From sequence record NC_061442.1: a DNA stretch of 64,000 bases; one strand, given 5' to 3'. Positions 6,921-59,530 of this stretch are shown here, one piece after another. The notes beneath the pieces are model-generated. The model was not told the origin of the DNA and did no database searches. It was given only the letters and a program-made list of their open reading frames with translations. The position numbers and the translations under genes are program-made. The stretch's first letter is position 1. The number at the start of each line of letters is the position of its first letter.

Positions 6921-7002
6921 ACTCTGCATATAATAGGTTGAAATAGCGGTGTACGCATATCAGTCAAAATGATACAATATAGTCTCTAGCGCAATAACGC
7001 GC
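6921..7002 (+). promoter_or_regulatory. Class-A phage promoter (upstream GG box + extended -10 + hairpin)
   Basis: actctgcatataataGGttgaaat; TGaTACAAT at 6970; gcgc-aataac-gcgc hairpin. Confidence 0.8.
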
Positions 7003-7027
7003 ATAACACTGCCGAGGGGCAAAAACA

Positions 7028-7399
7028 ATGACTATCAAATTTAACTCTGTTTACGAAATCTTTGAAGCTATGGAAATGTGCGCCAGCGATTCTGCTTTCA
7101 CCAAACAATGCGGTTTCCCTTATCCTGCGGTAGAAATTTTGCAGTGTGGTTTGCAGGAAGATTTAGGTGTGTATGCGTCAATGGCAGACGGCGTGAATTT
7201 CCTGATTGCAGATACGAGTGACCTGTTTTCTGAACATCTTCAAGGTGATGGTGAAATCACCGTTTGTCGTATCGAAACTCCCAACGGTGAGATGTTCGAC
7301 GAGCCAGAAGCTATCGTTGCGCAGCTGGGGACATTCAACGATTTTGATGAAGCATACGCAGCATTCACCACAGCCATAAACGCTGAACTCAACAAATAA
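7028..7399 (+). CDS. Small acidic hypothetical protein
   Basis: ORF with GAGGGG RBS. Confidence 0.8.
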   Translation: MTIKFNSVYEIFEAMEMCASDSAFTKQCGFPYPAVEILQCGLQEDLGVYASMADGVNFLIADTSDLFSEHLQGDGEITVCRIETPNGEMFDEPEAIVAQLGTFNDFDEAYAAFTTAINAELNK

Positions 7400-7469
7400 T
7401 AGGTCAAAAGCGCTATAGCAATATAGCGCTATTTATCGTACTATATATTCTCTAGCGCAATGATGCGCA
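7387..7469 (+). promoter_or_regulatory. Class-A phage promoter
   Basis: actcaacaaataataGGtcaaaa; TACTAT at 7439 (37 nt from GG); gcgc-aatgat-gcgc hairpin. Confidence 0.7.
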
Positions 7470-7496
7470 CATACAACACTTGCCAAGGGGCATACA

Positions 7497-7871
7497 ATGA
7501 AAGCAGCAAACTTCGATAAAGCATTCAACGCGAAAGATGAAGCAACTCTGAACGCATACGCAGCGCAAATCGTTGAAGCGCTCAACGCTCTGGGACGTAA
7601 TGACCTGAAGATCACTATTATCTTCGGCACTGACCCGTACGGCGAGCGCCCCGACTTCGTTAACGACCCCAACGGTTTTCGTGTCGTGCAGAACGGGGAA
7701 GAAATTTTCGATATCTACACCCCAACTGAAAAACAGATTGAAGGCGATGCGTCTGACGCTTTCATCTACGCTTCATGGGCAGACGGTGTAGCGCCGTGGG
7801 GCAAAGAAGTTTCAGACAATGACGTTGCTGAAATCGCAGCGCACCTGAACACTGCAATCCCAGCTCTGTAA
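7497..7871 (+). CDS. Small acidic hypothetical protein
   Basis: ORF with AAGGGG RBS. Confidence 0.8.
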   Translation: MKAANFDKAFNAKDEATLNAYAAQIVEALNALGRNDLKITIIFGTDPYGERPDFVNDPNGFRVVQNGEEIFDIYTPTEKQIEGDASDAFIYASWADGVAPWGKEVSDNDVAEIAAHLNTAIPAL

Positions 7872-7933
7872 CGAACAACTGACTGCGGGGTTACGGCCCC
7901 GCTTATATGACAACTTGCCAAGAGAACATAATC

Positions 7934-8239
7934 ATGACCAGAGAAGAACTGACTACACTGATTAGCAACTCACTCACACGCACTGACTTCGCAGTAATGA
8001 ACTGCGTAGAGCCTGATGACTACGAACTTGTTTTGCTCTATGAAGTAGACAGCGCTGGTGAATCACTTGGCGAGATGGGTTATGAAGTAGAATTGAATGA
8101 TGACGGCACATTCTCGCTTCACTACCTTGAGATGCCGTGGTCTCCTGAGCCGTTCCCGTCGTTCGCTAAAACTTCGAACTTCGACGAACTGATGGCAGCG
8201 ATAAACAGTATCGAGTTTCACGTTTCAGGTACTAACTAA
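7934..8239 (+). CDS. Small acidic hypothetical protein
   Basis: ORF track; start moved to ATG 7934. Confidence 0.7.
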   Translation: MTREELTTLISNSLTRTDFAVMNCVEPDDYELVLLYEVDSAGESLGEMGYEVELNDDGTFSLHYLEMPWSPEPFPSFAKTSNFDELMAAINSIEFHVSGTN

Positions 8240-8257
8240 CATTAAGAGGCAACAATC

Positions 8258-8503
8258 ATGTCAGAGAAACAAATCATCATCGACGTAATCGCAGACGTAG
8301 CATCACCAACAGAAGTTGTGTTTGAAGATGGCGAGTCTTCTAATCAATGGCTCGCGCCGTTCGATCTGCGCCTGACTGTGGCCCAGGCCTGCGGTCCGGC
8401 GGGCGTACCAGAAGTGAACATCATCGGCGATGAAGATAACCTGCGCCGCTTCTTGGCCGCGAACGATCAGTTCGAAGACGCTGAGATCGTAGACGTTATC
8501 TAA
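8258..8503 (+). CDS. Small acidic hypothetical protein
   Basis: ORF with GAGG RBS. Confidence 0.8.
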   Translation: MSEKQIIIDVIADVASPTEVVFEDGESSNQWLAPFDLRLTVAQACGPAGVPEVNIIGDEDNLRRFLAANDQFEDAEIVDVI

Positions 8504-8512
8504 CAAACAAAG

Positions 8513-8536
8513 AGCGGCGCTTCGGCGCTGCTTTTC
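8513..8536 (+). terminator. Intrinsic terminator
   Basis: agcggcgc-ttcg-gcgctgct-tttc. Confidence 0.8.
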
Positions 8537-8559
8537 TATTTCTGCCTGAGAATGCTGCT

Positions 8560-9117
8560 ATGAAAAATCAATATCTCATTATTCGCATGAACGCCGCAAA
8601 CTTCTACGACAAACAGTTTCTGATGCGTGGCTTTAACGCCAAGCGTATCGAGCAGGTCATTGGCGTTATCGTTATCATAGGCGATGAACATACATACTCG
8701 CTGAAAGACAGCATGTATCATTTAGCAAAAATTCACGTCGAACAGCTTACATCTGACACACAACAAAATTTAGTTAAGCTACGCTGGTCGAGCGTAGACA
8801 GCAAGCGCATAGAAGAAGGCTTGACGCGCATACCCACTGACTTGACAGACGCCATACGTGCGATGCGCAACACTCGATTGTATTATGAAGTCGATACGAC
8901 AATCCCACAGGCGTTTCGTGACTGCCACACTGAATTTGATATACCTACTGGTGCGCAAATGCGTGAGCGCATAAACAAACGACAACGTGAAGACGAGACA
9001 AAGATCAAACTTGTTGACCGCTCGCACGTAACGAAAGCGCTTAACGATTGCACTGTGGAAGAAATTCTAAAGCACCTGAAAGAGCGCACGGGCGCTGAGA
9101 TCACAATCAAGCTGTAA
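8560..9117 (+). CDS. Hypothetical protein
   Basis: ORF track, fills the gap on +. Confidence 0.75.
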   Translation: MKNQYLIIRMNAANFYDKQFLMRGFNAKRIEQVIGVIVIIGDEHTYSLKDSMYHLAKIHVEQLTSDTQQNLVKLRWSSVDSKRIEEGLTRIPTDLTDAIRAMRNTRLYYEVDTTIPQAFRDCHTEFDIPTGAQMRERINKRQREDETKIKLVDRSHVTKALNDCTVEEILKHLKERTGAEITIKL

Positions 9118-9180
9118 CAACTAATCAATGTGTGGCGTTACGGCGCCACATCATCACAACTTAATAGAGAGAATCACATC

Positions 9181-9789
9181 ATGTCTATCGTAACTTTTTT
9201 CGTAAAACGTTCTTATGCTTCACTTGGCGCAGGCAACTTCGCTATCGCTGCCTCACAGGTGCAAGAGCTGGCAGAAGCTGAGTGCTTCATCGTCTACACT
9301 AACACGGGACTGGGTAACACGTTCGCTGTGCGTAACATCACGATCACACCGCTCGATGAAAACAGCGTGACTGTTTCATTCGACCCTCTCACCGATGTTC
9401 ACGCGCTGCCTGCTTCGATTCTCCCTAAAGAGATTTTGAAAGAGTCAGTCGAGCGTATCGTAATGCCAGAAGAAGATATGCGTGAAGTGCCACGCTTCTA
9501 TATCGCCAACGATGCAAATGGCAATAACCCGAACCTGCTTGCGCTTGATCTGAACTGCCGTCAACGTTTCGTGCAGTATCATGGCGGCCTGTGTACGCTG
9601 ACCGATCTTGTGCTGGCGCTGTACGAGTCAGGCATTCATATCTCTGACATTCATCATGGCGTGAAGCAGAAAAGCAACGTTGCTGCCGTACTAGCACAAT
9701 ATCCCCGCACCGTGTTTGAGCTTAACAAAGATAACGGCGTTGTGAACGACAGCCTGCCTGCGCTGGCGCGTATGACCGTACTAATGTAA
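9181..9789 (+). CDS. Hypothetical protein
   Basis: ORF track; start moved past the UACG hairpin to ATG 9181. Confidence 0.75.
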   Translation: MSIVTFFVKRSYASLGAGNFAIAASQVQELAEAECFIVYTNTGLGNTFAVRNITITPLDENSVTVSFDPLTDVHALPASILPKEILKESVERIVMPEEDMREVPRFYIANDANGNNPNLLALDLNCRQRFVQYHGGLCTLTDLVLALYESGIHISDIHHGVKQKSNVAAVLAQYPRTVFELNKDNGVVNDSLPALARMTVLM

Positions 9790-9798
9790 ACAACTATC

Positions 9799-9822
9799 GC
9801 CTCGCATATCGCGGGGCTTTTC
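9799..9822 (+). terminator. Intrinsic terminator
   Basis: gcctcgc-atatc-gcggggc-tttt. Confidence 0.65.
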
Positions 9823-9837
9823 TATTTGGAGAATGTT

Positions 9838-10098
9838 ATGGTATACGAACGCGAAGAACTCGAAGACATGCCTCTCGATGTACTTTATCATCTGGCGAGT
9901 GCCAAAGGCCTGCTGGACGATCTGGACGATGATGACGATGCACCTGATCGTGAAGTGCTGGTGGGTATGATTCTTGACGACCAGAACGAACAGCAACTGG
10001 CTGACGAAGAAGCCGAAGACAAGCAACGTGCCGAAGATGATCGTGATCCACTAATCAATCGCCGTGACGGTCAGGATGGTTCTGACGACTACTGTTAA
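9838..10098 (+). CDS. Small acidic protein with HeH/LEM-like N-terminus
   Basis: EELEDMPLDVLYHLASAKGLL...DREVLVGMIL followed by a D/E tract. Confidence 0.7.
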   Translation: MVYEREELEDMPLDVLYHLASAKGLLDDLDDDDDAPDREVLVGMILDDQNEQQLADEEAEDKQRAEDDRDPLINRRDGQDGSDDYC

Positions 10099-10109
10099 GT
10101 AAACCCAGA

Positions 10110-10128
10110 GGCTGCCAGCGCTGGTGGC
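10110..10128 (+). repeat. Hairpin repeat ggctgccagYgctggtggc, copy 1
   Basis: 18/19 identical to 10512-10530. Confidence 0.8.
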
Positions 10129-10152
10129 TTCACTCACAAAGAAGGAGTAACA

Positions 10153-10503
10153 ATGAAGCGCAAAGTAATATTGATAGACACAGCAGAGTTTCAAAGCAAC
10201 CTACCGATCGCTCTACCGTCGATTATCGACTTCACTGATATTGAGTCAGTGGTTTTTGTCGTGAAGGCGAATGCAGAGTTCGGAGGCATCGAATATCTAG
10301 GCGCGTACCTAGCGTCTGAGATCTTCGTGGACTATACGAAGATACCGTTGGCGCAAACGATCAAGATCAACGCGTACGGTGTCGTGCCGTTAGAAGAAGC
10401 AATGAAGCGCAATCTTCAAAACGGCTATCAGTACACGGACGATGTACCTGACGAGCACAAACGCATTTATTCTGCAACGCCAACAACAATAACGTTCGCG
10501 TAA
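10153..10503 (+). CDS. Hypothetical protein
   Basis: ORF with AAGGAG RBS. Confidence 0.8.
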   Translation: MKRKVILIDTAEFQSNLPIALPSIIDFTDIESVVFVVKANAEFGGIEYLGAYLASEIFVDYTKIPLAQTIKINAYGVVPLEEAMKRNLQNGYQYTDDVPDEHKRIYSATPTTITFA

Positions 10504-10510
10504 TAACTAA

Positions 10511-10538
10511 GGGCTGCCAGTGCTGGTGGCCCTTTTTC
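10511..10538 (+). terminator. Intrinsic terminator (hairpin repeat copy 2)
   Basis: gggctgccag-tg-ctggtggccc-ttttt. Confidence 0.75.
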
Positions 10539-10581
10539 ATTTCTGTAAATACCTCGTACATTAATCAATGCGAGATATTCA

Positions 10582-10953
10582 ATGCGCCGCTTTCTGACAG
10601 TCTTTAACGTCACTCAACAGGAGTTTGACGACCGTCGCTTTTTCCAGCATAAGCTGAACATCATTACGACCATGCGCCGAACTCACGGCGTGTTGTTAGC
10701 TATTCGTGAAACAGGTAAAGTATTCGTAGCCTCTACCGCCTCATATCAAAGGGCAGAAGAATACGATCTGCGTCGTGTGGACTTCTCTGCTCCTAGTGAG
10801 GTTACGCACGAACTGGGTGAACGTTTCACCGAACTGAAACAGGCAATCGCTAACAACCTGCAGGACAAAAGCATTCGCTACTTCGGTCGCACGTTGTCGC
10901 TTAACGATGTACAGCAGGCTCTGTATCGCACACAACTGGAGATTATCTCATGA
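10582..10953 (+). CDS. Hypothetical protein
   Basis: ORF track. Confidence 0.7.
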   Translation: MRRFLTVFNVTQQEFDDRRFFQHKLNIITTMRRTHGVLLAIRETGKVFVASTASYQRAEEYDLRRVDFSAPSEVTHELGERFTELKQAIANNLQDKSIRYFGRTLSLNDVQQALYRTQLEIIS

Positions 10954-11192
10954 CAACAATCGCATCTCTAGGCGCTCGATTCGCCGCCTCTTCCTCTGAG
11001 CGTTGTTCTGCTCGTAAAAAGAAAGACCCAAAGAACAAGACGATCACCTGCGCAGGCACGACAGCCATGTATAACGCCGTAGAGAGACTTGCAATCAAAC
11101 TCAACGTGTCCCGCTCCCGTGCAGTAGAGATCGCCATTGAACAGCTTATGGAGAAACACGGAATTGTCGTGGAGGGTGCCGATGACAACTGA
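10950..11192 (+). CDS. Ribbon-helix-helix (Arc/CopG-like) DNA-binding protein
   Basis: KTITCAGTTAMYNAVERLAIKLNVSRSRAVEIAIEQLM has the RHH pattern. Confidence 0.65.
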   Translation: MTTIASLGARFAASSSERCSARKKKDPKNKTITCAGTTAMYNAVERLAIKLNVSRSRAVEIAIEQLMEKHGIVVEGADDN

Positions 11193-11547
11193 TACGATCT
11201 ACTGTCGTCTATACGGCGTTCAGTATCGTCTGGGTGTCACTGGCATCGACTTCTCACAATCGCCTACTGTCTACACAGTACATGCCTGTGACCTGCTGCG
11301 TATGCTGCCTCGTATTCATGTCGGGGCTGCCTACAGCACGTACACACCGTACCTTGTGCTAAAAGTAGGCCGTGCTGACTTCAAGATCAAACTGATTGAG
11401 AAGATAAGTGCTGACGAGTGGCGCTACTCATTCGTTGATAGCACAGGCAGACCATTCAACACTATTCTGAAACGGAGAAAGTATGACCATTGGTTTGATC
11501 AAAGTCTTAGGCCTAAAGGACAAGGCCCCAAAGGGATTCGATCTTGA
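11182..11547 (+). CDS. Hypothetical protein
   Basis: GGAGG RBS before ATG 11182. Confidence 0.7.
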   Translation: MTTDTIYCRLYGVQYRLGVTGIDFSQSPTVYTVHACDLLRMLPRIHVGAAYSTYTPYLVLKVGRADFKIKLIEKISADEWRYSFVDSTGRPFNTILKRRKYDHWFDQSLRPKGQGPKGIRS

Positions 11548-12115
11548 TATCACACCAGTCTCACGCGATGATGATTGGTGGTCGCTGAGTCCTTTCTATC
11601 TAGGCCCGTGTCGTACTCCTGACGGTATGATGTTCTTGAACATGGAAAACATGTGGCAGTACAGCAAAGTGTACGAAGAACATCTGGTTAATTCGAACGA
11701 CCTATTTCATGGAGAGATATCCCGTGAGTGGTGGGAATGGCATTTGAAAGGCAGTACAACCGAACAGGCGCATCGCTATCCAGCGGGGAAGGGTCGAAAG
11801 GCCCTGTTCTCGAAATGGGGTGACTTGCGCCTTTCGTACATTCCCGCACGAAAACAAATCTACGTTCCAGAGTATGCGAAGCTGGTCATTCACAAGCCGA
11901 AGTTCAAACGCTTGTTGAAGGATTATAAGAAAGGTGCCAAGATAGTCCTCAGAGATTATGACACCTACGATATTCAAAAGGCATACCCAGATTCTCGTAG
12001 CCCGTGGTTGTCTGCCATTCAAAACGAGAATGCAAAGTTCGGCCATGCGTTCGTCATTGCATTGGCCTTGATGTTCCACGAACGACCACTATGGTATAAT
12101 CAATGGGTAATCTGA
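11483..12115 (+). CDS. NADAR-like (DUF6939-type) protein
   Basis: LSPFYLGP...FLNMENMWQYSKVY...ARKQIYVPEY...FGHAFVIA resembles the NADAR SPF / xExxxQxxK pattern. Confidence 0.55.
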   Translation: MTIGLIKVLGLKDKAPKGFDLDITPVSRDDDWWSLSPFYLGPCRTPDGMMFLNMENMWQYSKVYEEHLVNSNDLFHGEISREWWEWHLKGSTTEQAHRYPAGKGRKALFSKWGDLRLSYIPARKQIYVPEYAKLVIHKPKFKRLLKDYKKGAKIVLRDYDTYDIQKAYPDSRSPWLSAIQNENAKFGHAFVIALALMFHERPLWYNQWVI

Positions 12116-12159
12116 CCAGGTACGTAGCCTGCATTGAGTTGTCTACCCGCGAAGGAAAT

Positions 12160-12423
12160 ATGAATCTGCCGATTCTACCTCGCTGTGAACTACAAGCATT
12201 TGTTCTTGATGGACACACGCAAACTAAAGTGCCTATCAAACTTAATGCCACAAACGTCATCAATGTGGCGGGCAAAACGTGTGGTAGTCTGCAATGGTTT
12301 GATTGTGTGAATCTGCTCATATGGTCATCGTTTGAGCCTGGCAGGTTTACGCTGTATATTGAACGTGCTTGCAAAACAGACGAGACTACAGACGACCAGC
12401 AATCTGCTGAACTCTGCAAATAA
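12160..12423 (+). CDS. Hypothetical protein
   Basis: AAGGA RBS before ATG 12160. Confidence 0.6.
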   Translation: MNLPILPRCELQAFVLDGHTQTKVPIKLNATNVINVAGKTCGSLQWFDCVNLLIWSSFEPGRFTLYIERACKTDETTDDQQSAELCK

Positions 12424-12487
12424 TAGGCTGAAATAGCCATTCAGTCAGATACGCTCCTATGATATACTATACGTGAGCGCAGTGCTC
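12411..12487 (+). promoter_or_regulatory. Class-A phage promoter
   Basis: actctgcaaataataGGctgaaat; TGaTATACT at 12460; gagc-gcagt-gctc hairpin. Confidence 0.85.
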
Positions 12488-12513
12488 ATAAAACTAACGC
12501 TGAGGAGCGTATC

Positions 12514-12963: not shown

Positions 12964-12967
12964 GCGC

Positions 12968-13347: not shown

Positions 13348-13349
13348 GA

Positions 13350-15297: not shown

Positions 15298-15300
15298 ACC

Positions 15301-18102: not shown

Positions 18103-18489
18103 ATGCGTCATTGGGGATCGCGCTATGTGCGATCCTCCTCCGGCAAGTGGTATTCAGTTCATGGCCGTGAGGGTACGTGGGTAACGAATCGTTACGGTAC
18201 TTCATTCTATCGAAGCGGCTCCGAAGTATGGCGTGACATAACCCGCGCTGACCGCGAATCGCTAGAGCGTGAATTAATCAAACGTACACGCGAAGACTTT
18301 AAGGAGAATAAACTCAAGTATAACCACTGGGGCAATATAGTGAGGGCTATTGCTAGGCAGTCAGAAGACGAAAAGAATGAGCATACGGCAGAACTTGCTG
18401 AGATGCTCGAAGCGCTTAGACAGACTTTCTACGGACAGAAGGTACAGCAACTAAGCACAATTCTGGACGAAATAGCCGTTAAGAAGTAG
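18103..18489 (+). CDS. Hypothetical protein
   Basis: GGAG RBS before ATG 18103. Confidence 0.7.
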   Translation: MRHWGSRYVRSSSGKWYSVHGREGTWVTNRYGTSFYRSGSEVWRDITRADRESLERELIKRTREDFKENKLKYNHWGNIVRAIARQSEDEKNEHTAELAEMLEALRQTFYGQKVQQLSTILDEIAVKK

Positions 18490-18510
18490 GCTGATTCGTG
18501 CTATAATAGA
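18450..18510 (+). promoter_or_regulatory. Class-A phage promoter, upstream box embedded in the preceding ORF
   Basis: aagcacaattctGGacgaaatagc (GG at 18465); TGcTATAAT at 18499. Confidence 0.75.
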
Positions 18511-18556
18511 GATGAACGCTAGACAGTCGTTTAGCTACTTACATGAGGACATGTAT

Positions 18557-21560: not shown

Positions 21561-21824
21561 ATGGCTGTAGGCTTCGTAAAAGATGATGGCGTTAATGACA
21601 CCATCGAAGCTAACCTGAACAACGAGATTGACCGCGCCCGTGCAGAACTCTTAGGTAAGGGCACTACGCATTGCGTTAACCCTGATTGCGGTGCAGAGAT
21701 TCCCCTCATGCGCCGTGTAGCAATGCCGAATGCACGTTACTGTGTTGCCTGTCAATCAAGCCACGATGGTTCGGCGGTGAGCCTGTACAATCGTCGTGGT
21801 TCAAAAGATTCTCAACTGAGGTAA
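21561..21824 (+). CDS. ybiI: DksA/TraR C4-type zinc finger protein (YbiI-like)
   Basis: DDGVNDTIEANL..EIDRARA..C..CG.EIP..RR.A.P..RYCVACQ..YNRRGSKDSQLR, matching enterobacterial YbiI including the C-terminus. Confidence 0.9.
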   Translation: MAVGFVKDDGVNDTIEANLNNEIDRARAELLGKGTTHCVNPDCGAEIPLMRRVAMPNARYCVACQSSHDGSAVSLYNRRGSKDSQLR

Positions 21825-25935: not shown

Positions 25936-26916
25936 ATGCGATTTGGTTTCGCCTGCAAGCTGATTGACCCACAAGGCAAACAGCCGTACACAAACAAAAG
26001 TCTAAGCTATAAACATTTCTCTGCCTTATCTGCACCTGACCAACATGACAAGCTCTTGGACGTCGTTACGCATAACCTGACTTCACTGCTATCTATGATC
26101 AAACACGTTGGTCAGTTACGTACGGATATGCGCATGTTCCGAATCACAAGTGAGTTGCTGCCTCTATACACGCACCCTAAGGTGTTTCACATGTACATGC
26201 GACATGATGTTGTGCGCCTGACTGAAACTATGCTGGCGCTATGTGGCAAAGCAGCAAGACGACATGGTGTGAGGCTTTCATTCCACCCAGGACAATTCAC
26301 GGTGCTCGCGTCTGATCGACCAGACGTTGTTCAAAACTCGATTGCTGAACTTGAGTACCACGCTTACTGCGCCTATCACATGGGATACGGTAGACGCTTT
26401 CAAGACTTCAAGATCAACATTCACCTTAGCGGTAGATTAGGTGCAGTAGGATTCAGAGCAGCCTTTAGCAAACTCTCTACCCACTGTCGAAAGATGCTGA
26501 CTGTGGAGAACGATGAAATCACTTCGAGCATTGAGGACGTACTGACATTATCCGACCTGTGTCCTATCGTGCTGGATATACATCACCACTGGGTAATGAC
26601 TAACGAGTATATACGACCAGAAGATGATCGTGTGCGACAAGTCATAGATTCTTGGCGAGGTGTTCGACCTGTAGCGCATTACTCTGTGTCTAAGCCTGAG
26701 TTTGTTCCTTCTCGCGGTCTGCCTGATCAAAACAAGCTGCCTGCTAATCGTATGCAGTTACGAGCACACTCTGATTACTATCATAATGAAGACGTGAGCG
26801 AGTGGGCGCTTTCATTCACTGATTTTGACCTAATGTGTGAGTCAAAAGCGAAGAATCTAGCACGTACAAAATTGGCATGTTTTTCAGGCAACTCTGCAAA
26901 TAACTGGACAAAATGA
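25936..26916 (+). CDS. uvsE: UV DNA damage endonuclease (UvsE/UVDE)
   Basis: MRFGFACK, RMFRITS, RLSFHPGQF, LEYH, INIH, TVENDE, LDIHHH, HYS, HSD, MCESKAK. Confidence 0.95.
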   Translation: MRFGFACKLIDPQGKQPYTNKSLSYKHFSALSAPDQHDKLLDVVTHNLTSLLSMIKHVGQLRTDMRMFRITSELLPLYTHPKVFHMYMRHDVVRLTETMLALCGKAARRHGVRLSFHPGQFTVLASDRPDVVQNSIAELEYHAYCAYHMGYGRRFQDFKINIHLSGRLGAVGFRAAFSKLSTHCRKMLTVENDEITSSIEDVLTLSDLCPIVLDIHHHWVMTNEYIRPEDDRVRQVIDSWRGVRPVAHYSVSKPEFVPSRGLPDQNKLPANRMQLRAHSDYYHNEDVSEWALSFTDFDLMCESKAKNLARTKLACFSGNSANNWTK

Positions 26917-26968
26917 GGCTTGTATCTGAATATAGCCCTGTGATACACTAGATATGAGCATTATCGCT
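26891..26968 (+). promoter_or_regulatory. Class-A phage promoter
   Basis: actctgcaaataactGGacaaaat; TGaTACACT at 26941; gagc-attatc-gctc hairpin. Confidence 0.85.
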
Positions 26969-26998
26969 CGTCAGAATAACTAGAATCGAGGAATCGCT

Positions 26999-29121: not shown

Positions 29122-30332
29122 CCGAAGCTGAACTGAACAACGACTACATCGTTAACGCAGCAAAAACTATCTTCACCGCAGGGACAGTGCAACAACGTGA
29201 CGCCTTGCGAACTATCGCTAATACTGTCCTTTCAGGCAAAGCTGCTTTCGCTTACGAAGACTGTTCGTTGGATATTGAAACAACGTATCGTCTGTTAGAA
29301 GAAATCCAGTTTACTGGTGATGGCCGTCGAATGTTGCCTGCCGATGAAATTGTCGCGCTTGATAACATCTTGCGCAAGAACTGGCGCAAAGACTTCTTCA
29401 CCGCAGTATCGAACATGGCTCTGACTATGTACAGTACAGACCCACGTACTGCTGGACGCGGCTTCTGGCCGACGAGTCATAGCGAGTGTGCGCTGCTTGT
29501 GCATCGTGCGTTCTTGTGGGTTGTCGCCCAGAACGGTCTTACTAATCTGCTGCGTGAGAACTATATGGGTGTGAGTCATACTCGCCTGCCTCAGTTTATC
29601 GTAGCGTTTCAAGTCGCAGGTAAAGACGAAGGTGTTGCGCGTCATTACACTCTGTATAATGCGCAGGAAGATTGCGGGACCATCACTACGAACAATCTTC
29701 TGCCTGAGGACTACAAAGAGAAACTGGCGGCAGAGCTTTTAGCGAATCGTCCTGCTGAGTATGATGCCGTAGAGCACATGGATTTTGACGAACTGATCGA
29801 ACTGTGCGAACGTCTGAACGTTATCGGACCAAACTCGACCAAGCGCCAGGCCACTTGCGATTGTAGCATTGACGATGATTGTGAGTGTGACGAAGAAGAC
29901 GAGCCTATGACCCGCGACGACTTCGATAAAGATGAAGTCGGTGACCTGCGCGATCACTTCTGGCAGAAGTACGGTTACCCAGACGACGAGCCTGAAATCC
30001 CAGACGAAGATGTGTGGATTCCCGGTGTGTCTCAAATGGAAGTCCGTATCGATCTTCCTGTAGTAACTCTGTCTGACCCAGACAAACAGATTGTCCCACG
30101 TGCTGGCATGAAGATGAAGTCCCGCGCGAAAAAGCCTATGGGCAAAAGTGAGCCTGTTGTGCTGTCTTACGCCCAACAAATCTGGCATGAGCTGGATAGC
30201 AAGAAAGAGTTTGGTGATCGTAGTTTCGCAATCACTCTCGTTTCTCGCCATACGTGCGGAGTTAGTCGCGCAGTCGCTACGACCCGTGAAGCGCTGGCAA
30301 TCGCTACTGCACTGATGGATGTAAGCAAATAA
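29118..30332 (+). CDS. Hypothetical protein with helical module and acidic tract
   Basis: EHMDFDELIELCERL followed by a D/E-rich segment. Confidence 0.8.
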   Translation: MTEAELNNDYIVNAAKTIFTAGTVQQRDALRTIANTVLSGKAAFAYEDCSLDIETTYRLLEEIQFTGDGRRMLPADEIVALDNILRKNWRKDFFTAVSNMALTMYSTDPRTAGRGFWPTSHSECALLVHRAFLWVVAQNGLTNLLRENYMGVSHTRLPQFIVAFQVAGKDEGVARHYTLYNAQEDCGTITTNNLLPEDYKEKLAAELLANRPAEYDAVEHMDFDELIELCERLNVIGPNSTKRQATCDCSIDDDCECDEEDEPMTRDDFDKDEVGDLRDHFWQKYGYPDDEPEIPDEDVWIPGVSQMEVRIDLPVVTLSDPDKQIVPRAGMKMKSRAKKPMGKSEPVVLSYAQQIWHELDSKKEFGDRSFAITLVSRHTCGVSRAVATTREALAIATALMDVSK

Positions 30333-30400
30333 CTGGTCAGAATAGCGCTTCTTCGTGAGGCGCTTCTATGATATAATCATAGATAGAGCAACAATGCTCT
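30320..30400 (+). promoter_or_regulatory. Class-A phage promoter
   Basis: gtaagcaaataactGGtcagaat; TGaTATAAT at 30369; agagca-acaa-tgctct hairpin. Confidence 0.85.
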
Positions 30401-34649: not shown

Positions 34650-35591
34650 ATGACCAAAATGGTTGCACTGCCTTTCGCTTCTTCTGAACAACGCAATCGC
34701 TTCTTCGATCAACGCGTGGGTGACCTAAAACTTAACGCCGTCTGGAACTACGTTGTATCAAACAACAATCCGAACTGGAAAGGCGATCCTCTGCTGCACC
34801 ACATGCACTACCATTCGACCGAGCATATGAAGCAGGTAACTGCTCTGGCTCTCTGGCTGCTGGATAAAGAAGCGCAACAGCCGTGGCAATACGATACTGG
34901 GGCCTTGCCTCTTGCTGTGGCCTGTATGTTCCACGACATGGACCACTCACTTGGTCGCCTCAACGATGCAAGTAATATTCGTCTGGCGCAAGAGGCTTTC
35001 AAGAAGTATCTGACCGTGTGTGAAGATGAACGTATTAAAGATCACGAAGCAATTATCCTAGACCTGATTGACATTACGCGCTTCCCGTACATGAAGAACC
35101 GTCAGCCGAAGAATCTGATTGAGCGTTGCATTCGTGATGCGGATATTCTCTACGGTATGCAGGACGATGCACTGGACGTTGTGATATTCTCGCTGCGCCG
35201 TGAAGTAAACCGTAACGTAAATGAAAACGTGTATTTCCAGGCAGACCAGTGGGCACAAGGCCGTGTTGACTTCGTTCGCAGTGTTGAAATCTACTGCCCG
35301 TCTGCTGACGCAATGATGGAATGGCTACTGGCGGAAGACAACGATCACAACCATCAAGATAAGATTGACGACTGGATGCGTCACGAAGTCAGTTTCCGAG
35401 ACACGTCCGCGCATAAACTCAAAGCCAATGACGTGCTGTTCATCGACACGCAGGAAGACAGCACACCGAAGCGCCGTCTGATTGAACGTGTCGAAACAGT
35501 TCACCCGTATCTCAATATCTACTTTGACGGAGGCGAATCTATCTCGCTACGTGATGGTGAGAGTTGTGTGGTTGTCGAACGTCGCAAATAA
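34650..35591 (+). CDS. HD-domain phosphohydrolase
   Basis: YHSTEH...FHDMDH...RDAD. Confidence 0.85.
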   Translation: MTKMVALPFASSEQRNRFFDQRVGDLKLNAVWNYVVSNNNPNWKGDPLLHHMHYHSTEHMKQVTALALWLLDKEAQQPWQYDTGALPLAVACMFHDMDHSLGRLNDASNIRLAQEAFKKYLTVCEDERIKDHEAIILDLIDITRFPYMKNRQPKNLIERCIRDADILYGMQDDALDVVIFSLRREVNRNVNENVYFQADQWAQGRVDFVRSVEIYCPSADAMMEWLLAEDNDHNHQDKIDDWMRHEVSFRDTSAHKLKANDVLFIDTQEDSTPKRRLIERVETVHPYLNIYFDGGESISLRDGESCVVVERRK

Positions 35592-35640
35592 TAGGCTGAA
35601 ATAGTCATGTACTGACTAGGCGCCTGTGATATAATACGCA
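35579..35640 (+). promoter_or_regulatory. Class-A phage promoter
   Basis: gtcgcaaataataGGctgaaat; TGaTATAAT at 35627. Confidence 0.85.
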
Positions 35641-39634: not shown

Positions 39635-39934
39635 ATGTCACACAAACAAATCCTGATGAATGATGTTGCTATCGTCCTAACTATGAGTGAGCGCCGCGCG
39701 TTCCTCGGACCGAAAGCTGACGGCTTTGTGTATCTGCCATCTAAGGATGCTCTCACGAAATTTGAGGCGCATATCAAGAAGTATGGCAATCGTGATGACT
39801 ATGCGTTTATTGACCATCGTGAGCTACATTCTATTAGCTCTGCGGGCATTGTCGCTATTGCTCATGCTGTCGAGTCTGATTCTGAGCAGCCATGGCTGTG
39901 GACGAAAGAAGACTTCCGCGTCAAGCTGTGGTAA
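39635..39934 (+). CDS. Hypothetical protein
   Basis: GAGG RBS before ATG 39635. Confidence 0.7.
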   Translation: MSHKQILMNDVAIVLTMSERRAFLGPKADGFVYLPSKDALTKFEAHIKKYGNRDDYAFIDHRELHSISSAGIVAIAHAVESDSEQPWLWTKEDFRVKLW

Positions 39935-40008
39935 GCATAAAACTGGCTAAAATCGTGGTATCAGTCTGAACCGTCCTATGATATAATAGAAGCGTAGCTT
40001 GTGCTGCG
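39930..40008 (+). promoter_or_regulatory. Class-A phage promoter
   Basis: gtaagcataaaactGGctaaaat; TGaTATAAT at 39979; gcgtagc..gctgcgc hairpin. Confidence 0.85.
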
Positions 40009-40040
40009 CTTTTTTAACATATGTCTGAGGAGACAACAAA

Positions 40041-41499: not shown

Positions 41500-41859
41500 A
41501 TGAAGTTCAACGAAGTATCCAAAGAGGCGCAAGTCGCCCTAATGTCAAGTGCCTTGGCTGGCGTAATCGAAGCGTTCACGCGTGAAGATGGAGACGAAGG
41601 TCGCAAGATTCTAGTCTTAGCACTCAAGCAAGTCGGTCTGACTGTAGACGAGTTCGGCGCTCTTATCTCTGACTTGTCTCCAGAAGTTGAGCTTGAAATT
41701 GTCAGTGTTATGGAAGCTGCCGATGCAGAGCCGGACGAAGATGACGACGACGAAGAACCTGCTGACGACGACTCTGATACAGACGCAGACGGCTGGCAGA
41801 ACCTGCATGAAGATCGCGTGTGTCTTGTATGCAACCATGAAAGCTGCATCTGTCACTAA
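41500..41859 (+). CDS. Acidic hypothetical protein
   Basis: AGGAGG RBS; C-terminal CxxC..C.CH. Confidence 0.8.
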   Translation: MKFNEVSKEAQVALMSSALAGVIEAFTREDGDEGRKILVLALKQVGLTVDEFGALISDLSPEVELEIVSVMEAADAEPDEDDDDEEPADDDSDTDADGWQNLHEDRVCLVCNHESCICH

Positions 41860-41915
41860 TCTGCATAAATCTGGACAAAACGACGGTTGTCTCAAATAGC
41901 TGCCTGAACTATACT
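41858..41915 (+). promoter_or_regulatory. Class-A phage promoter
   Basis: aatctgcataaatctGGacaaaac; TATACT at 41910 (37 nt from GG). Confidence 0.75.
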
Positions 41916-41919: not shown

Positions 41920-42095
41920 AGACAGCGAGACAACGTTCTCTCTGAATGCCTTTGTTATGCTTTAGTCGTGTGTTTTCTATTTTCCCGGGCACACGGCTCT
42001 TTTTAGAGTGACTTCACTGAGGTTGCTTTAAAAAGAGTTCGATACTCTTTGAGCGCGTCGGGCTTTACGCGGTTTCCGCCTTACGTGCTCTCATG
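41920..42095 (+). ncRNA. Long structured 5' leader or candidate ncRNA
   Basis: About 200 nt non-coding, with four or more hairpins including a T-loop-like aagag-TTCGATA-ctctt. Confidence 0.4.
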
Positions 42096-42117
42096 CTAAA
42101 CCGCAAAGGAAATTGAA

Positions 42118-42825: not shown

Positions 42826-42868
42826 GCAATAATAAGCAGGCAGTCTACATGCTGCCTGCTATCTGCGA

Positions 42869-42950
42869 AGTATGCAGAAAACTGGACAAAATCGTGGTTG
42901 TTATCTGACGGCCACCTATGCTATAATAGATTCAGACGCAATAGTGCGTC
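42869..42950 (+). promoter_or_regulatory. Class-A phage promoter
   Basis: gtatgcagaaaactGGacaaaat; TGcTATAAT at 42919; gacgca-atag-tgcgtc hairpin. Confidence 0.85.
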
Positions 42951-42984
42951 GCAAACAAAACACTTATACTGAGGAGTATTAATC

Positions 42985-52710: not shown

Positions 52711-52745
52711 CAACGTCGCTTCTAATCAAACAGGAAATAAATATC

Positions 52746-54279: not shown

Positions 54280-54310
54280 GCAAGCGCCGCGCAATAGCGG
54301 TACTTGATCT

Positions 54311-54343
54311 AAAAGGGCAGCGCTGACGAGCGTTTGCCCTTTT
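54311..54343 (+). terminator. Intrinsic terminator
   Basis: aaaagggca...tgccctttt. Confidence 0.8.
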
Positions 54344-54376
54344 GTCATATCTGTCTCAAATTTTGAGGTAAACCGA

Positions 54377-54871
54377 ATGTCTGCTGAACATTTGCTTAAC
54401 GATGACCTACCGGACGATACTCTCTCCACGAAAGTACCCACCTCTCCTGAAAAGCCCAACTACTACGCGTTAATGACTATGCGACTTGAAGCTGGCGCTC
54501 GTCTTGCTCGTGCTCTGAAAACCCTGAAAGATGCCAACGTGTTTGGTGATGATAATACCGTGAACGGTAGTCTCATGTTGACTGAGGCTCTGAAGGTTGC
54601 AGAAGCTAACTGGGCACACATCTGCATGGGATACACGCCTGTAAAAGATTCTAATGACCGAGAGTCTCTGCGTGATAACCTTCCTGCCTGCATCGAAGCA
54701 TTCCGTGTTGTCGTAATGGAACATGCTCAACGCGAAGCATTGGAGCGTGAGTGCAAACTCATGATTAGCCACGCAGAAGGTTTCAAAATTCTGACCCAGC
54801 CTCAAACAATACAGATTGAGCCACTACACTTCTGCGATGGAACCTGCGACCATGACACAAAAACTGTCTGA
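54377..54871 (+). CDS. Hypothetical protein
   Basis: GAGG RBS. Confidence 0.75.
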   Translation: MSAEHLLNDDLPDDTLSTKVPTSPEKPNYYALMTMRLEAGARLARALKTLKDANVFGDDNTVNGSLMLTEALKVAEANWAHICMGYTPVKDSNDRESLRDNLPACIEAFRVVVMEHAQREALERECKLMISHAEGFKILTQPQTIQIEPLHFCDGTCDHDTKTV

Positions 54872-55382
54872 GCAAATCAACCGCTATTTTAATCTCATGG
54901 AGAAAATCCGTGAGCAACTGTTCCGTGTGTTGAACGTGTCCGATCGCTACCTGTGCATCGTGAGCTTTAACACCCAGCATCAGGCAATGCAGTGCGACCT
55001 AGTTAGTCGTGAGAGCCTGCTGCCCGCCAAGCTACTTGAAGGTCTTAGTGGTCAGGAGCTTGTAGTGTACGGCACCATTACTGCCCAGATTGAGAAATGG
55101 GTAGCAGACGGTATGAGCGACGACTTCCCGATTACGCAAGACGCCGATACCTACGCGCAGTATCGCAAGCTGGTGGACCCTGAGCAAGAGCCTGCTATCT
55201 CTGACGCTAACTTGGCAGAGCATGTTGCCTCTCTACCTAAGTCAGATGCCCTGAAATACGTTGACCCTCTGAGCAAGTACGAGCTTGCGATTATCTGCAA
55301 AGCATGGGGACTTGAACAAGATGCCAGCGAGACTGTTATGCTATCTCTCGTCAAGGGCTATATTCTGCGCCGTGACTCGTAG
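54852..55382 (+). CDS. Hypothetical protein with C-terminal HeH-like segment
   Basis: LSKYELAIICKAWGL; start moved to 54852. Confidence 0.7.
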   Translation: MTQKLSEQINRYFNLMEKIREQLFRVLNVSDRYLCIVSFNTQHQAMQCDLVSRESLLPAKLLEGLSGQELVVYGTITAQIEKWVADGMSDDFPITQDADTYAQYRKLVDPEQEPAISDANLAEHVASLPKSDALKYVDPLSKYELAIICKAWGLEQDASETVMLSLVKGYILRRDS

Positions 55383-55387
55383 CTTGA

Positions 55388-55466
55388 ACTCTGCAAATAG
55401 TTGGACAGAACGTGGGTAGCGTCTAATACTTTAGTATGATATAATAGCCGTAGGACAAGTAGTGTC
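55388..55466 (+). promoter_or_regulatory. Class-A phage promoter
   Basis: actctgcaaatagttGGacagaac; TGaTATAAT at 55437; ggaca..tgtct hairpin. Confidence 0.85.
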
Positions 55467-55515
55467 TGCATATGCTAATATCGAGTAGTAATGCTACTCA
55501 TAGGAGATCACGAAA

Positions 55516-57543
55516 ATGGCCAAAGCGCCGAAAGCTGCCAAAGTAAAAAAGAAAACGGGTGATGGTTCCCAAGAAGGTTTCGTAATTCACGAAGGCTTAT
55601 CGGGTATCAGAGAAAACCCCGGCATGTACATGGGTCAACGTGGCGAAGACATGGCGTATCGCGCGGTCAAAGAACCTGTGGACAATGACTACGATGAATA
55701 CATCGCTGGACGTAACAAGTTGATCGAAGTGGTCATTGATTACGACAACGACCTGAACATCGTAGCTGACCAAGCTGGCGGCATCCCTACCGACTTCAAG
55801 AAGTTGAAAGACGGTACGAAAGAAACGATCATGACCGCAGCATTTAGCCGCGTTCATGCGGGTGGTAAATTTAACGATCAGGCGTATAAGACTTCTGCTG
55901 GTACGCACGGTGTTGGCGTCGCGGCACTGAACGCCATATCCAGTCAGTTGCGCGTGTGGTCAATGTACAAAGGCGGCTGCGTCTATCAGATGTGGCAGTG
56001 TGGTGAAGTCAAGTCAGGCAAAGACCCTAAGAAAGTCAAGACCATCGACAAAGACGTTATGAGCCTGCTGCGTGATAAGAAACACAGCAAGTACGGTACA
56101 GTGGTTGCGTGGACGCTCGACCAGACAGTTGTGTCTGCTGACGTTATGCGCGGTAAGAAGCTGCCGAAGAACTATCGACACGCAGCGCCGAACCCTGCTC
56201 AACTGGGCGAGTGGTTGCGTAACATGTCGATGCTCAACCCAGGCCTTGAGATTCGTTTGACGTTGATCAAGAAGGGCAAGCGCAAAGAGTTCACGTTCCA
56301 CAACAAGAAAGACCTGAACTTCGTTGTGAAGACGATGTGCGAAGAACGTGAGCTGGGCACTGTCGGTAAGCCGTTCATCTTCAAGTCAGATAATATCACT
56401 GCTGCACTTGTCTGGACCGATCACGCCGACACTGATAACTTCCTGACGTTCGTTAACACAAGCCCGACAGTTGATGGCGGGTGGCACGTTGTTGGTTTCC
56501 GTGACGCGCTGTTTGATGCTATCAAGCCGTTCATGAAAGAATCGAAGGGCAAAGGCAAGAAGAAGCAGAACTTCAAACAGGAAGATTTGCTTATCGGTCT
56601 GACTGGTATGTTCGACTGGCGTATGCACGGTGCGCAGTATACGTCACAGGTAAAAGACAAGCTGGCCAGCCGTGTAGAGAAAGACGTATACGCAGAACTG
56701 AACAAGGCGTTTGTCGAATACTTCAAGACGAACAAGAAAGTTGCTACGACGATCATCAAACGCGCCGAAGCAATGAACAAGGGACGTGAAGAACTCAGCG
56801 CCGTCGTCAAGTCTATGGCTGACACGAAGAAGAAGCTGAAAGGTAACGCACTCCCTGCGGACCTGATCACTGCAAACAAGTGCAAGCCTCATGAGCGTGA
56901 ACTGATTGTTGTGGAAGGGGACTCTGCTGGTGGTACTGCACAGGATGCGCGTAACCCTGACTATCAGGAAGTTATGCTCGCTGGCGGTAAGCCGCTGAAC
57001 GGACTGAAAGCAAGTCTGGCTGATGTGCTCAAGCACAAAGAAGTGCAGGGCCTGTTAGTGAGTATGGGTGCTGACTTGAAATCGCTCGACCCGAAAGCAG
57101 ACGCACCGATTCTCAGTACGAAGAATCTGCGTATCGGTAATTTGCTGCTGCTGATGGATGCTGATGCTGACGGCTTCCACATCGCAACGTTGTTCCTAGG
57201 TGTTATCTATCGCCTGCTGCCTGACATGTTCCGTGAAGGGCGTGTGTGGATCGTCGATGCGCCTCTGTATAACGTCGTACACAAAGGCAAGCACTACGGT
57301 GGCATGACGTTTGAAGAATGCCGATCGCTCGCACCATCGTCTGTGAAAGACAAAGACATTGTACGTGCTAAAGGTTGGGGTGAAGTCGAGCCTGACGTGC
57401 TGGAAGCTATCGCATTCGATCCGAAGACGCGTCGTGTCATTCGCGTGAATCCATTCGAAAGCGTAGAGCAGGAACGTTTCTTCCGTGGTGTTCTCGCAGA
57501 AGATGCCGTGCACCGTCGTCGCTTACTGGGTCTGGAGAGCTAA
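55516..57543 (+). CDS. gyrB: Type IIA DNA topoisomerase, ATPase/TOPRIM subunit (GyrB/ParE family)
   Basis: IRENPGMYMG, KEPVDN, HAGGKF, GTHGVG, VEGDSAGG, MDADADG.HI. Confidence 0.95.
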   Translation: MAKAPKAAKVKKKTGDGSQEGFVIHEGLSGIRENPGMYMGQRGEDMAYRAVKEPVDNDYDEYIAGRNKLIEVVIDYDNDLNIVADQAGGIPTDFKKLKDGTKETIMTAAFSRVHAGGKFNDQAYKTSAGTHGVGVAALNAISSQLRVWSMYKGGCVYQMWQCGEVKSGKDPKKVKTIDKDVMSLLRDKKHSKYGTVVAWTLDQTVVSADVMRGKKLPKNYRHAAPNPAQLGEWLRNMSMLNPGLEIRLTLIKKGKRKEFTFHNKKDLNFVVKTMCEERELGTVGKPFIFKSDNITAALVWTDHADTDNFLTFVNTSPTVDGGWHVVGFRDALFDAIKPFMKESKGKGKKKQNFKQEDLLIGLTGMFDWRMHGAQYTSQVKDKLASRVEKDVYAELNKAFVEYFKTNKKVATTIIKRAEAMNKGREELSAVVKSMADTKKKLKGNALPADLITANKCKPHERELIVVEGDSAGGTAQDARNPDYQEVMLAGGKPLNGLKASLADVLKHKEVQGLLVSMGADLKSLDPKADAPILSTKNLRIGNLLLLMDADADGFHIATLFLGVIYRLLPDMFREGRVWIVDAPLYNVVHKGKHYGGMTFEECRSLAPSSVKDKDIVRAKGWGEVEPDVLEAIAFDPKTRRVIRVNPFESVEQERFFRGVLAEDAVHRRRLLGLES

Positions 57544-57544
57544 C

Positions 57545-57799
57545 ATGTTCAACATTGCAAAGTTGCCTGACGGGACGCAGGTTCGTTTTCTCGATATGCC
57601 TGACGTGCAGTACCCACCAATGACTGACGAGCAACGTAGCCAGTGTGAGGCGCTGTATGGTAAAGCGCGTGAGCTTGCGAAGAACGTTACCGTGTCTGGG
57701 TTCACTGTAGTTGACGGACTACCGAACGAACGTGTGCAGATTCAAATGCGCCGCACAACTCTCGATAAGATTAATGCGATTGCCAAAGGAGAACAGTAA
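57545..57799 (+). CDS. Small hypothetical protein between the topoisomerase genes
   Basis: GGAG RBS before ATG 57545; TAATG overlap with the next gene. Confidence 0.7.
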
Positions 57800-59457
57800 T
57801 GGCAATTACGCCGAAGAAAGTGAAAGTCAAAAAGGTTAAGCCGACCGCTGTGGCGAAAGCCGCTAAGCCTGCAAAACTCAAAGCGAAAGCCGTGTCAGTC
57901 GATGATATCAAAAAGAAGAAGAAGAAAAGCACCGACGTTGCTGCATCGAACGCTGTTGGTACTTCGCTTTATCCCCTGCTTGGGCAGGACCCAAAGCTGA
58001 TTCACGATGAAGGCCTGTCTGACTATACTCGACGGGCGCTGTCTCACTATGGCGCATACGTTGTTGAAGACCGTGCTATCGCTGACTATCGTGACGGCCT
58101 CAAGCCTGTGCACCGCGCACTGCTGTGGTCGCTGTCTGACTTGGGCTTACGACCAAGCGCGGCGTTCAAGAAGTCGGCTCGTACTGTAGGCGACACAATC
58201 GGTAAGTATCACCCACACGGTGACGCTGCCTGCTACGGTGCGATGGTTACGATTGCGAATACAGTACCTCCTGCTGTAGCGGGTCAAGGTAACTGGGGCA
58301 ACCCTGTGTCTGCTGCTGCTGCGCAACGTTATACCGAAGCGCGTATGTCAAAGTTCACAGGCTCGTTCCTGCTTGACCCTGACTATCTCGAAGTTGTGCC
58401 TCGTGTGCCGAACTTCTCGAATGACCTTGAGATTCCTCTGTACTTGCCAGCGTTGCTTCCGTACATGCTATTCAATAGCTCGGTACCAGCGCCAGCATAT
58501 GGTGTGAAGTGCGGTAACCCACCGTTCAGCTTTAGCTCCGTCAGCAAAGTTGTGTGTGACATGCTCAACGGCGTTCAATACGATGCGAAGAAGCTCGCTA
58601 AGACGCTCAAGATCGTCCACACGTACGGCTGTGAAGACGTGACGACTGACGAGGAGATGCTGCAACTGATCTCTACAGGCAAGGGCAAAGTCACGTACCA
58701 GCCGCTAATGCACGTCGATGAAAAGAACAAGCTGGTCATCATCCAGACCTATGTACCTGCTGGTATGTCGAAGCTCGACGCCATCACGAAGAAGCTGGAG
58801 AAGATTGGCGAGTGGAACGGCGTTGTGTCTGCGCGTAACGCAAGCGGTAAGAAGAACAAGCACTCTGGTCCGTATGGCGCGGCATTCGAAATCAAATGCC
58901 GAGGCAGCGAAGACCTGTTGTATGAGACTGCGAAGAAGGTCATGCGGGAAGTGACTTCGAGCGTCAACTATACGCTGGGTGTAACCGTTCGTCGTGCTGA
59001 TGCTTCAAACAAGTTCATGTACCTCGACTACCTGAAGTATTTCAAAGCGTGGATTGCGTATCGCATTAAGCTCGAAACTGCGATGCTCCAGAACAAGCTG
59101 ACGAAAGCAGAGAAGGCATTGCACTTACAGCAAGTCTACCTATGGGCTGTAGACAACATGGACAAGCTGCTCAAAGTGTTGCCGAAAGTGTTGGTCGCTG
59201 CTGACCCTGACGCGATGCTTGCGAAGCTGTGTAAGATTCCTGTTGAAGATGCGAAGATCATCCTCGACCGTCAGGTACGTAAACTGGCGAAACTGGAACG
59301 CAGTGGTCTGCTCGCTAAGATTAAAGAAATCAAGGCAGAGATTGCTGGATATAAAGCAGGTCTGAAAGAGCCGGGCAAATACGCGGCAGAAGGTACTGCG
59401 GCGAAAGTTAAGGCGTATATGAAATCGCCTGACGACAAGATGCCTGTCAATCTGTAA
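57799..59457 (+). CDS. gyrA: Type IIA DNA topoisomerase, breakage-reunion subunit (GyrA/ParC family, no CTD)
   Basis: [37 protein letters not shown] (catalytic Tyr). Confidence 0.95.
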
Positions 59458-59473
59458 TAGATCTGTAAATACA

Positions 59474-59530
59474 ACTCAGCATATTCTAGGACGAAACGCG
59501 GTTGTGTCTGTATGTCATTTATGTTACAAT
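59474..59530 (+). promoter_or_regulatory. Class-A phage promoter
   Basis: actcagcatattctaGGacgaaac; TGtTACAAT at 59522. Confidence 0.75.

Follow-up and report, generated by a model that had tools for sequence, protein, structure and literature searches.

Introduction

The early promoters of bacteriophage T4 have been described as 'UP/-35/TGn/-10' promoters that carry additional consensus regions (Hinton 2010, PMC2988021). The PeSL/PmSL elements of T4-like phages are repeated cassettes that couple an early promoter with a stem-loop and lie between small variable open reading frames (ORFs), with signs of exchange (PMC2839356, PMC4122927); in a PeSL the stem-loop immediately precedes the promoter and acts as a transcription terminator (PMC4122927). 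The UP element of rrnB P1 consists of two A/T subsites about one helical turn apart, which span -58 to -37 (Ross 1993, Estrem 1998; in PMC2613000). The present work deals with twelve promoter-like elements in the genome of Erwinia phage pEa_SNUABM_35 (hereafter S35; NC_061442.1, Alexandravirus, 261,719 bp), in each of which a conserved upstream box precedes a -10 hexamer at a fixed distance. All of them lie in the final 64 kb of the genome (positions 197,720-261,719), a stretch termed here the window, to which coordinates refer unless genome coordinates are indicated. The family is real, strongly selected and clade-specific and most likely consists of early promoters, a fairly ordinary phage feature in a new form.

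The T4 early promoters and the PeSL cassettes are closer analogues of these elements than are the MotA-dependent middle promoters of T4. With the T4 early promoters they have in common many copies of one strong phage consensus, a TGn motif with a good -10, small and apparently early genes downstream and, as predicted here, the use of unmodified host sigma70; a conserved sequence in the region contacted by the polymerase alpha subunit's C-terminal domain (alpha-CTD) and consensus positions beyond the host elements are likewise found in both. They differ in that the -35 element is nearly absent (T-35 only), in that the upstream block contains invariant G/C positions, and in the clade itself, which is unrelated in this respect. 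Like the PeSL elements, the S35 promoters occur as repeated cassettes of promoter and stem-loop among small variable ORFs, with signs of exchange, yet in S35 the hairpin begins near +1, and a T-run comes after it at site 8 only. The sole terminator-like hairpin upstream of a -10 is that of site 2, where it lies inside the promoter, and nothing in the PeSL elements corresponds to the box, apart from an upstream region that is AT-rich in general. The box resembles the rrnB P1 UP element in its location and its pair of A/T-rich parts, but it has invariant GC at -59/-58 and GG at -49/-48, the T-tract being replaced by nnGGn.

Promoters that depend on phage activators offer a further comparison. 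The Ogr site of the P2 late promoters lies near -55. At Mu Pm, the Mor site is centred at -43.5 (PMC4390567). Both types resemble the S35 elements in their poor -35, in having a conserved element upstream whose distance is fixed, and in a possible contact with alpha, whereas their sites are dyad-symmetric and the promoters inactive without the activator; a dyad is missing from the S35 box, and the extended -10 that accompanies it is predicted to be strong alone. The T4 middle promoters also combine a good -10 with a non-standard upstream element, but their MotA box is centred at -30 and works through sigma appropriation, and the S35 box stands 20-30 bp further upstream. The preliminary description of this DNA had invoked MotA-box logic, an analogy that does not hold, for the MotA box at about -30 replaces the -35 element (PMC2988021), while the S35 box extends from -66 to about -35, has a different sequence and accompanies an excellent extended -10.

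S35 is one of the 'hairy' jumbo myoviruses, as are Y3, AD1 and the JA phages (PMC6143709). The transcription signals of this clade of ~260-kb phages (Alexandravirus, Sasquatchvirus, Salmondvirus) seem previously undescribed: a literature search, outside which the Y3 genome paper (Res Microbiol 2018) fell, returned no description of the motif or of the clade's promoters. Phages of the clade are under development against fire blight and soft rot. The twelve promoters, together with two further motifs, provide a testable three-class map of the expression programme, and they single out some 50 kb, in which most genes are of unknown function, as a region likely to be expressed early and to serve host takeover. 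With six invariant positions over 47 sites, the box is an unusually well-defined upstream element, which could show how upstream DNA substitutes for a -35 and whether the alpha-CTD region can, in a phage, also be read sequence-specifically. A further possible use of these sequences is as strong promoters of compact size in Enterobacterales.

Results and Discussion

The upstream box and its fixed distance to the -10 hexamer

Twelve sites had been proposed, and a search with the degenerate (IUPAC) consensus at no more than one mismatch finds exactly these, all on the + strand; the count of 12 compares with 0.44 expected from shuffles and with 4 in the richest shuffle. A position weight matrix (PWM) of 31 nt, from GG-17 to GG+13 around the central GG dinucleotide, was run against the complete genome of 261,719 bp on both strands. 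The twelve sites score 27.9-37.1 bits (19.9-33.8 when each is left out of the matrix in turn), while the next-best match genome-wide reaches 12.6 bits and the maxima of shuffled genomes average 15 bits, the highest being 18.3. These sites are the genome's entire set of box copies, and they fall within 52.5 kb of mostly ORFan genes.

The -10 hexamer begins 37 nt after the GG at nine sites, 36 nt at two (35594 and 59489) and 38 nt at one (42884), in agreement with the range of 36-38 nt originally given; at 26906 it was read by eye as TGaTACACT at +37. All twelve hexamers read TAnnnT. The claims of an extended TGn at ten sites (7402 and 41873 lack it) and of mostly poor -35 positions were equally borne out, the latter by a two-hexamer scan that just 3-4 sites pass at a threshold of 9/12. 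Every site lies on the coding strand, with a start codon 26-64 nt downstream at ten of them and at 196 and 266 nt at the remaining two. As to the extent of the box, its location upstream of the -10 stands, but the interval of -60 to -41 proposed for it was too short: counted from a transcript start assumed 7 nt past the hexamer, the conserved block covers about 32 bp, from about -66 to -35, and reads AAcTcTGCAaAtAa..GG..rAAAt.g.g.T, including a near-invariant T at -35. The letters of the genome thus support one promoter architecture that is specific to the phage and keeps its upstream box at a fixed distance.

The box is closely interwoven with the ends of the preceding genes. As previously noted, its TAA is the stop codon of gp246, gp258, gp294 and gp304 (ends 7399, 12423, 30332 and 35591; gene numbers are those of the record), and the boxes at 18465 and 26906 lie within the last codons of gp271 and gp287. 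Such overlap, or at least abutment, with the upstream stop codon at most sites might suggest a role of the box at the RNA level, where it would signal 3'-end formation, processing or termination for the gene upstream, and the hairpins in the spacers of site 2 (7409-7430) and site 6 would suit such a role. This is extremely improbable, however. Pairing inside the box (-51 to -35) amounts to 53% in register, no better than in slid registers, with no covariation; an Rfam scan of the window gave no match; and only an element acting in DNA would be expected to keep its distance to the -10 within +/-1 nt. A scan of the window for transfer RNA genes was likewise negative. Since there is no consistent pairing inside it and its spacing is fixed to +/-1 nt, the box is taken to be a DNA element rather than an RNA one. 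Two hairpins that could be drawn within it (GGCT…AGCC and ACAA…TTGT) were rejected, as pairing in register equals that of slid registers. By inspection, the consensus contains no inverted repeat, and an informal comparison by eye with the consensuses of LexA, Fis, IHF, DnaA, PhoB and CRP gave no convincing match to the box.

Conservation in related phages

Alexandra, AD1 (whose host is Dickeya solani) and Y3 (Sasquatchvirus) each carry 11-12 copies of the box, at orthologous positions and before orthologous genes, which together with S35 gives 47 orthologous sites. Six positions (C-58, A-57, A-55, G-49, G-48 and A-43) are invariant in all 47, and T-35 is retained in 46. The distance from GG to hexamer is 37 nt in 35 sites, 36 in five and 38 in seven. 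The -10 reads TAnnnT throughout, most often as TATAAT (19/47) or TATACT (12/47), and is preceded by TGn in 42.

The preliminary description held that the box is under selection even where it overlaps coding sequence, and the comparison of orthologues upholds this: mean identity is 0.80-0.82 in the box, against 0.71 in the -10 region, 0.56 in the spacer between the two and 0.52 at the 3' ends of the upstream genes. The spacer (-34 to -16) is the least conserved part of the promoter itself, with an information content of about 0.3 bit. As the box is the best-kept part of the whole region, purifying selection is indicated.

A uniform set of boxes could also arise if the box had no function of its own and the cassette had been duplicated and then kept uniform by recombination, as proposed for the PeSL cassettes. 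There are signs of exchange. A homologue of gp246, the gene behind site 1, occurs in Y3 only, while gp247, behind site 2, matches the gene behind site 1 in Alexandra and AD1; this single case suggests that the genes behind promoters 1 and 2 have been swapped cassette-wise among S35, Alexandra/AD1 and Y3 by exchange between promoter copies. The 5' hairpin of S35 sites 1 and 2 is also present at Y3 site 10, and the boxes of Y3 are slightly more alike (0.647) than non-orthologous boxes of different genomes (~0.61). Nonetheless, orthologous boxes are 0.74-0.90 identical, compared with 0.62 for paralogous ones. Orthologues being far more alike than paralogues, inheritance has been mainly vertical and homogenisation does not explain the pattern; moreover, the box is conserved where spacer and gene ends drop to 0.52-0.56, as expected of purifying selection rather than homogenisation. 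A box devoid of function is accordingly very improbable, and concerted evolution of boxes within a genome was rejected as an explanation of their conservation, given the small size of the effect in Y3.

Beyond these four phages, a variant of the box, AACTCTGCAAAT…GTGTCCAAAAT, occurs about ten times in JA29 (Salmondvirus); it retains G-49, and nine of the ten copies have T at -48. When IMG/VR was scanned for the exact pattern, matches with a correctly spaced -10 came solely from ~260-kb relatives; a further 12 matches in other contigs lack the -10, and they are about as numerous as estimated for chance.

Recognition of the promoters

Jumbo phages without a polymerase of their own depend on the host enzyme, which they are thought to use together with their own sigma factors (PMC13282480, PMC7824862). 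S35 has a single annotated sigma factor, gp237, which matches a PHROG sigma family. Neither MotA nor AsiA appears by name among the 336 annotated products, no search aimed at their homologues having been made. As no phage RNA polymerase is annotated, we infer that host sigma70 holoenzyme reads the promoters upon entry of the DNA. Elsewhere in the genome, matches to canonical -35/-10 promoters are not enriched over shuffles, nor are extended -10 matches enriched genome-wide, and six of the seven perfect TGnTATAAT sequences on the + strand belong to box sites. The genome thus has no other strong sigma70-type promoter class, and the box promoters are the sole class that unmodified host polymerase should recognise.

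Our preferred explanation, to which we assign a probability of roughly 0.55, is that the twelve elements are early promoters for host sigma70 with an UP-type upstream box. Host holoenzyme would read them as soon as the DNA enters, recognising the core through the extended -10 (TGnTAtAaT), with the -35 element reduced to the conserved T at -35 and the box, at about -66 to -35, supplying the missing upstream contact. The box indeed lies where the alpha-CTD or a class-I-type activator binds (PMC2613000), as had been supposed. Its match to the UP consensus string used here is 7.8-8.3 of 14 positions at a shift of -2 to 0 and 2-5 off register, the invariant G/C bases not being UP features. The A-tracts of the box (-57 to -52 and -45 to -41) match the register of the distal and the proximal UP subsite, which makes two alpha-CTDs its most likely readers. 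The positions G-59, C-58, G-49 and G-48, outside UP recognition, may be read or tuned by a factor of the phage lineage. Transcription would begin about 7 nt past the hexamer, and at 9-10 sites the transcript would open with a short GC-rich hairpin that may shield its 5' end from decay.

Two further motifs, derived from the upstream regions of our own ORF calls, bear on this interpretation. The first, class ii (aaTCTGTAAAtA), stands 27-67 nt ahead of at least 27 genes on both arms of the genome, among them the sigma factor gp237, the single-stranded DNA-binding protein and the clamp-loader genes. This motif probably serves a later class of genes as core promoter. The second, class iii, is described below.

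Several points weigh against host sigma70 and alpha-CTD as the sole readers. C-58, G-49 and G-48 are present in 47/47 sites, whereas a pure UP element needs no invariant G/C. AD1 and JA29 share a Dickeya solani host strain, yet JA29 has T-48 in nine of its ten copies; the base at -48 thus tracks the phage lineage and not the host, which a phage-encoded reader fits better than the alpha-CTD. A single base separates TCTGCAAATA, the distal half of the box, from the class ii word TCTGTAAATA, a likeness that hints at a shared phage-specific reader. In addition, the lack of an RNA polymerase gene among the 336 annotated features comes from the annotation only, with no homology search made, and both the start sites and the early timing are deduced from the sequence. 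The G/C bases and the JA29 variant, in particular, leave room for a phage-specified reader.

It is also possible, at a lower probability than the host-read promoters, that the box is the operator of a phage-specified protein, made early or delivered with the virion, which binds at about -60 to -40. Such a protein could recruit polymerase as an activator, in which case the promoters would be delayed-early or middle ones, or it could shut off the early promoters as it accumulates. The invariant G/C within an otherwise A/T-rich block and the lineage-specific change of G-48 to T despite the common host strain both speak for an operator, as does the closeness of the distal half to the motif of ~27 other genes. 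In JA29, two boxes precede a class-ii-like core, at the usual distance, in place of TGnTATAAT, so that the box can serve different core elements and may be an upstream module of general use. The first early operon encodes gp255, a weak ribbon-helix-helix candidate and, as a reader of the box, no more than a candidate. An activator is not easily reconciled with a near-perfect extended -10 core, which should fire unaided, or with a genome that has no other sigma70-type promoters from which to make the activator first. The box further lacks the dyad symmetry of most dimeric regulator sites, and a conserved block of ~32 bp is long for one small regulator.

In a more specific and rather doubtful version, a clade-specific phage protein reads the box by a recognition akin to that of class ii, the class ii core being TCTG-T-AAATA and that of the box TCTG-C-AAATA. 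If so, one factor would activate the next class of genes and, from -60, shut off or boost the early promoters, and 'start here' and 'regulate from here' would be told apart by one base; the change at -48 in JA29 would then mark the co-evolution of site and reader.

The same likeness could be taken to mean that a second, tandem promoter of class ii (TCTG-C/T-AAATA), used by a phage sigma factor or a modified polymerase, makes up the distal half of the box, so that the genes behind it would be transcribed in two phases. Box AAcTCTGCAAATAA does resemble class ii AAtCTGTAAAtA, and a perfect TATAAT occurs within the box at promoter 1 and at Y3 sites 1, 3 and 5. Tandem early and middle promoters are, besides, common in T4. 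Yet C-58 is present in 47/47 copies of the box, whereas all class ii copies, gathered through the exact word CTGTAAA, have T at this position, and the C-variant TCTGCAAAT was not found outside boxes. Class ii sites also lack the GG and the proximal A-tract of the box, and independent promoters need no spacing fixed to +/-1 nt. A tandem promoter is thus improbable, and early promoters read by host sigma70 remain the reading that we adopt for the description below.

Genome organization and two candidate promoter classes

The phage has a G+C content of 49%. In genome coordinates, its + strand genes run from ~181.7 kb through the record end to ~41.3 kb, and the - strand genes occupy 41.4-181.6 kb, where most structural genes are housed. 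The first genes behind the twelve promoters are almost all ORFans in Pfam and PHROG searches and offer no functional clue. Also encoded in the presumed early region are a radical SAM protein, a zinc-finger protein of the DksA/TraR type and topoisomerase II subunits. The gene content of the promoter-driven region fits early expression, though it is no proof of it. The product of gp277 (21561-21824) is the DksA/TraR-type zinc-finger protein (Pfam E = 7e-12) and, going by this match, likely binds the secondary channel of the polymerase. The gp255 gene (10950-11192) is the one with the weak ribbon-helix-helix match (E = 0.0018, below the Pfam cut-off), and may encode a small DNA-binding protein.

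Class ii motifs start in the window at 2436, 10543, 23960, 28223, 48049, 51124, 51955, 51980, 52635, 52692 and 59463, and Y3 and JA29 retain the motif at orthologous positions. A single base sets it apart from the T4 late motif, TATAAATA. The class iii motif, gCTAATTT, lies 30-90 nt before 19 genes, nearly all of them structural and on the - strand, mostly between 45 and 182 kb of the genome; in the window it lies at 4374 (genome 202093). It is a candidate late promoter. Box promoters, class ii and class iii together look like a three-class expression programme.

The twelve promoters and their leaders

A third conserved part of the promoters, absent from the preliminary description, is a short GC-rich hairpin after the hexamer, found at 10-11 of the 12 sites. 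It begins between -5 and +7 of the predicted start, and 11 compensatory base pairs are kept among the phages. The promoters, all on the + strand, are numbered here in window order.

Promoter 1 (6919-6978; GG at 6936, TGaTACAAT) has its 5' hairpin at 6989-7002 and would drive gp246. Promoter 2 (7385-7444; GG at 7402) has TACTAT without TGn, a 5' hairpin at 7455-7468 and gp247 downstream; the terminator-like hairpin in its spacer, between box and -10, shows compensatory changes in Alexandra and AD1. The two promoters (6919-7871 with their surroundings) are 466 nt apart and have near-identical 5' leaders. Promoter 3 (12409-12468; GG at 12426, TGaTATACT; hairpin 12473-12489) precedes gp259. The next two have their box within coding sequence: promoter 4 (18448-18507; GG at 18465 in the 3' end of gp271, TGcTATAAT; hairpin 18518-18535) would drive the radical SAM gene gp272, and promoter 5 (26889-26948; GG at 26906 in the 3' end of the endonuclease gene gp287; hairpin 26954-26971), with the TGaTACACT mentioned above, gp288. 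Promoter 6 (30318-30377; GG at 30335, TGaTATAAT; hairpin 30385-30400) is followed by gp295. At promoter 7 (35577-35635; GG at 35594, TGaTATAAT at +36) there is no 5' hairpin, and the leader to gp305 measures 26 nt.

Promoter 8 (39928-39987; GG at 39945, TGaTATAAT), ahead of gp312, has an 11-bp stem with a T-run at 39988-40013. The predicted start lies inside the 5' arm of the stem, so that read-through from upstream would terminate there and new transcripts would not; this hairpin would thereby add termination to its presumed protective role. Promoter 9 (41856-41915; GG at 41873) has TATACT without TGn and the 196-nt leader to gp316. Promoter 10 (42867-42927; GG at 42884, TGcTATAAT at +38; hairpin 42935-42950) would drive gp317, and promoter 11 (55386-55445; GG at 55403, TGaTATAAT; hairpin 55450-55469) the large subunit of topoisomerase II, gp329. 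Promoter 12 (59472-59530; GG at 59489, TGtTACAAT at +36) has a 12-bp hairpin at 59543-59575 and a conserved leader of 266 nt to gp332; the class ii motif TCTGTAAATA at 59463 stands directly upstream of it.

The leaders contain additional conserved features. In many early genes, the Shine-Dalgarno sequence (GAGG/AGGA) is presented in the loop of a 4-6 bp hairpin ahead of the start codon, as at 7010-7027, 12496-12513, 18540-18556, 40024-40040 and 42967-42984, and this arrangement is kept across the phages. The leader of promoter 12 (59538-59802) includes blocks identical in four phages, and it is considered non-coding because its indels are not multiples of three. Three helices are predicted in it, with 9 pairs preserved through double changes; it could be a structured RNA or another DNA signal. 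No ORF in the leader of promoter 9 (41922-42117) is convincing; the sequence with which this leader starts, AGACAGCGAGACA, has been conserved in four phages.

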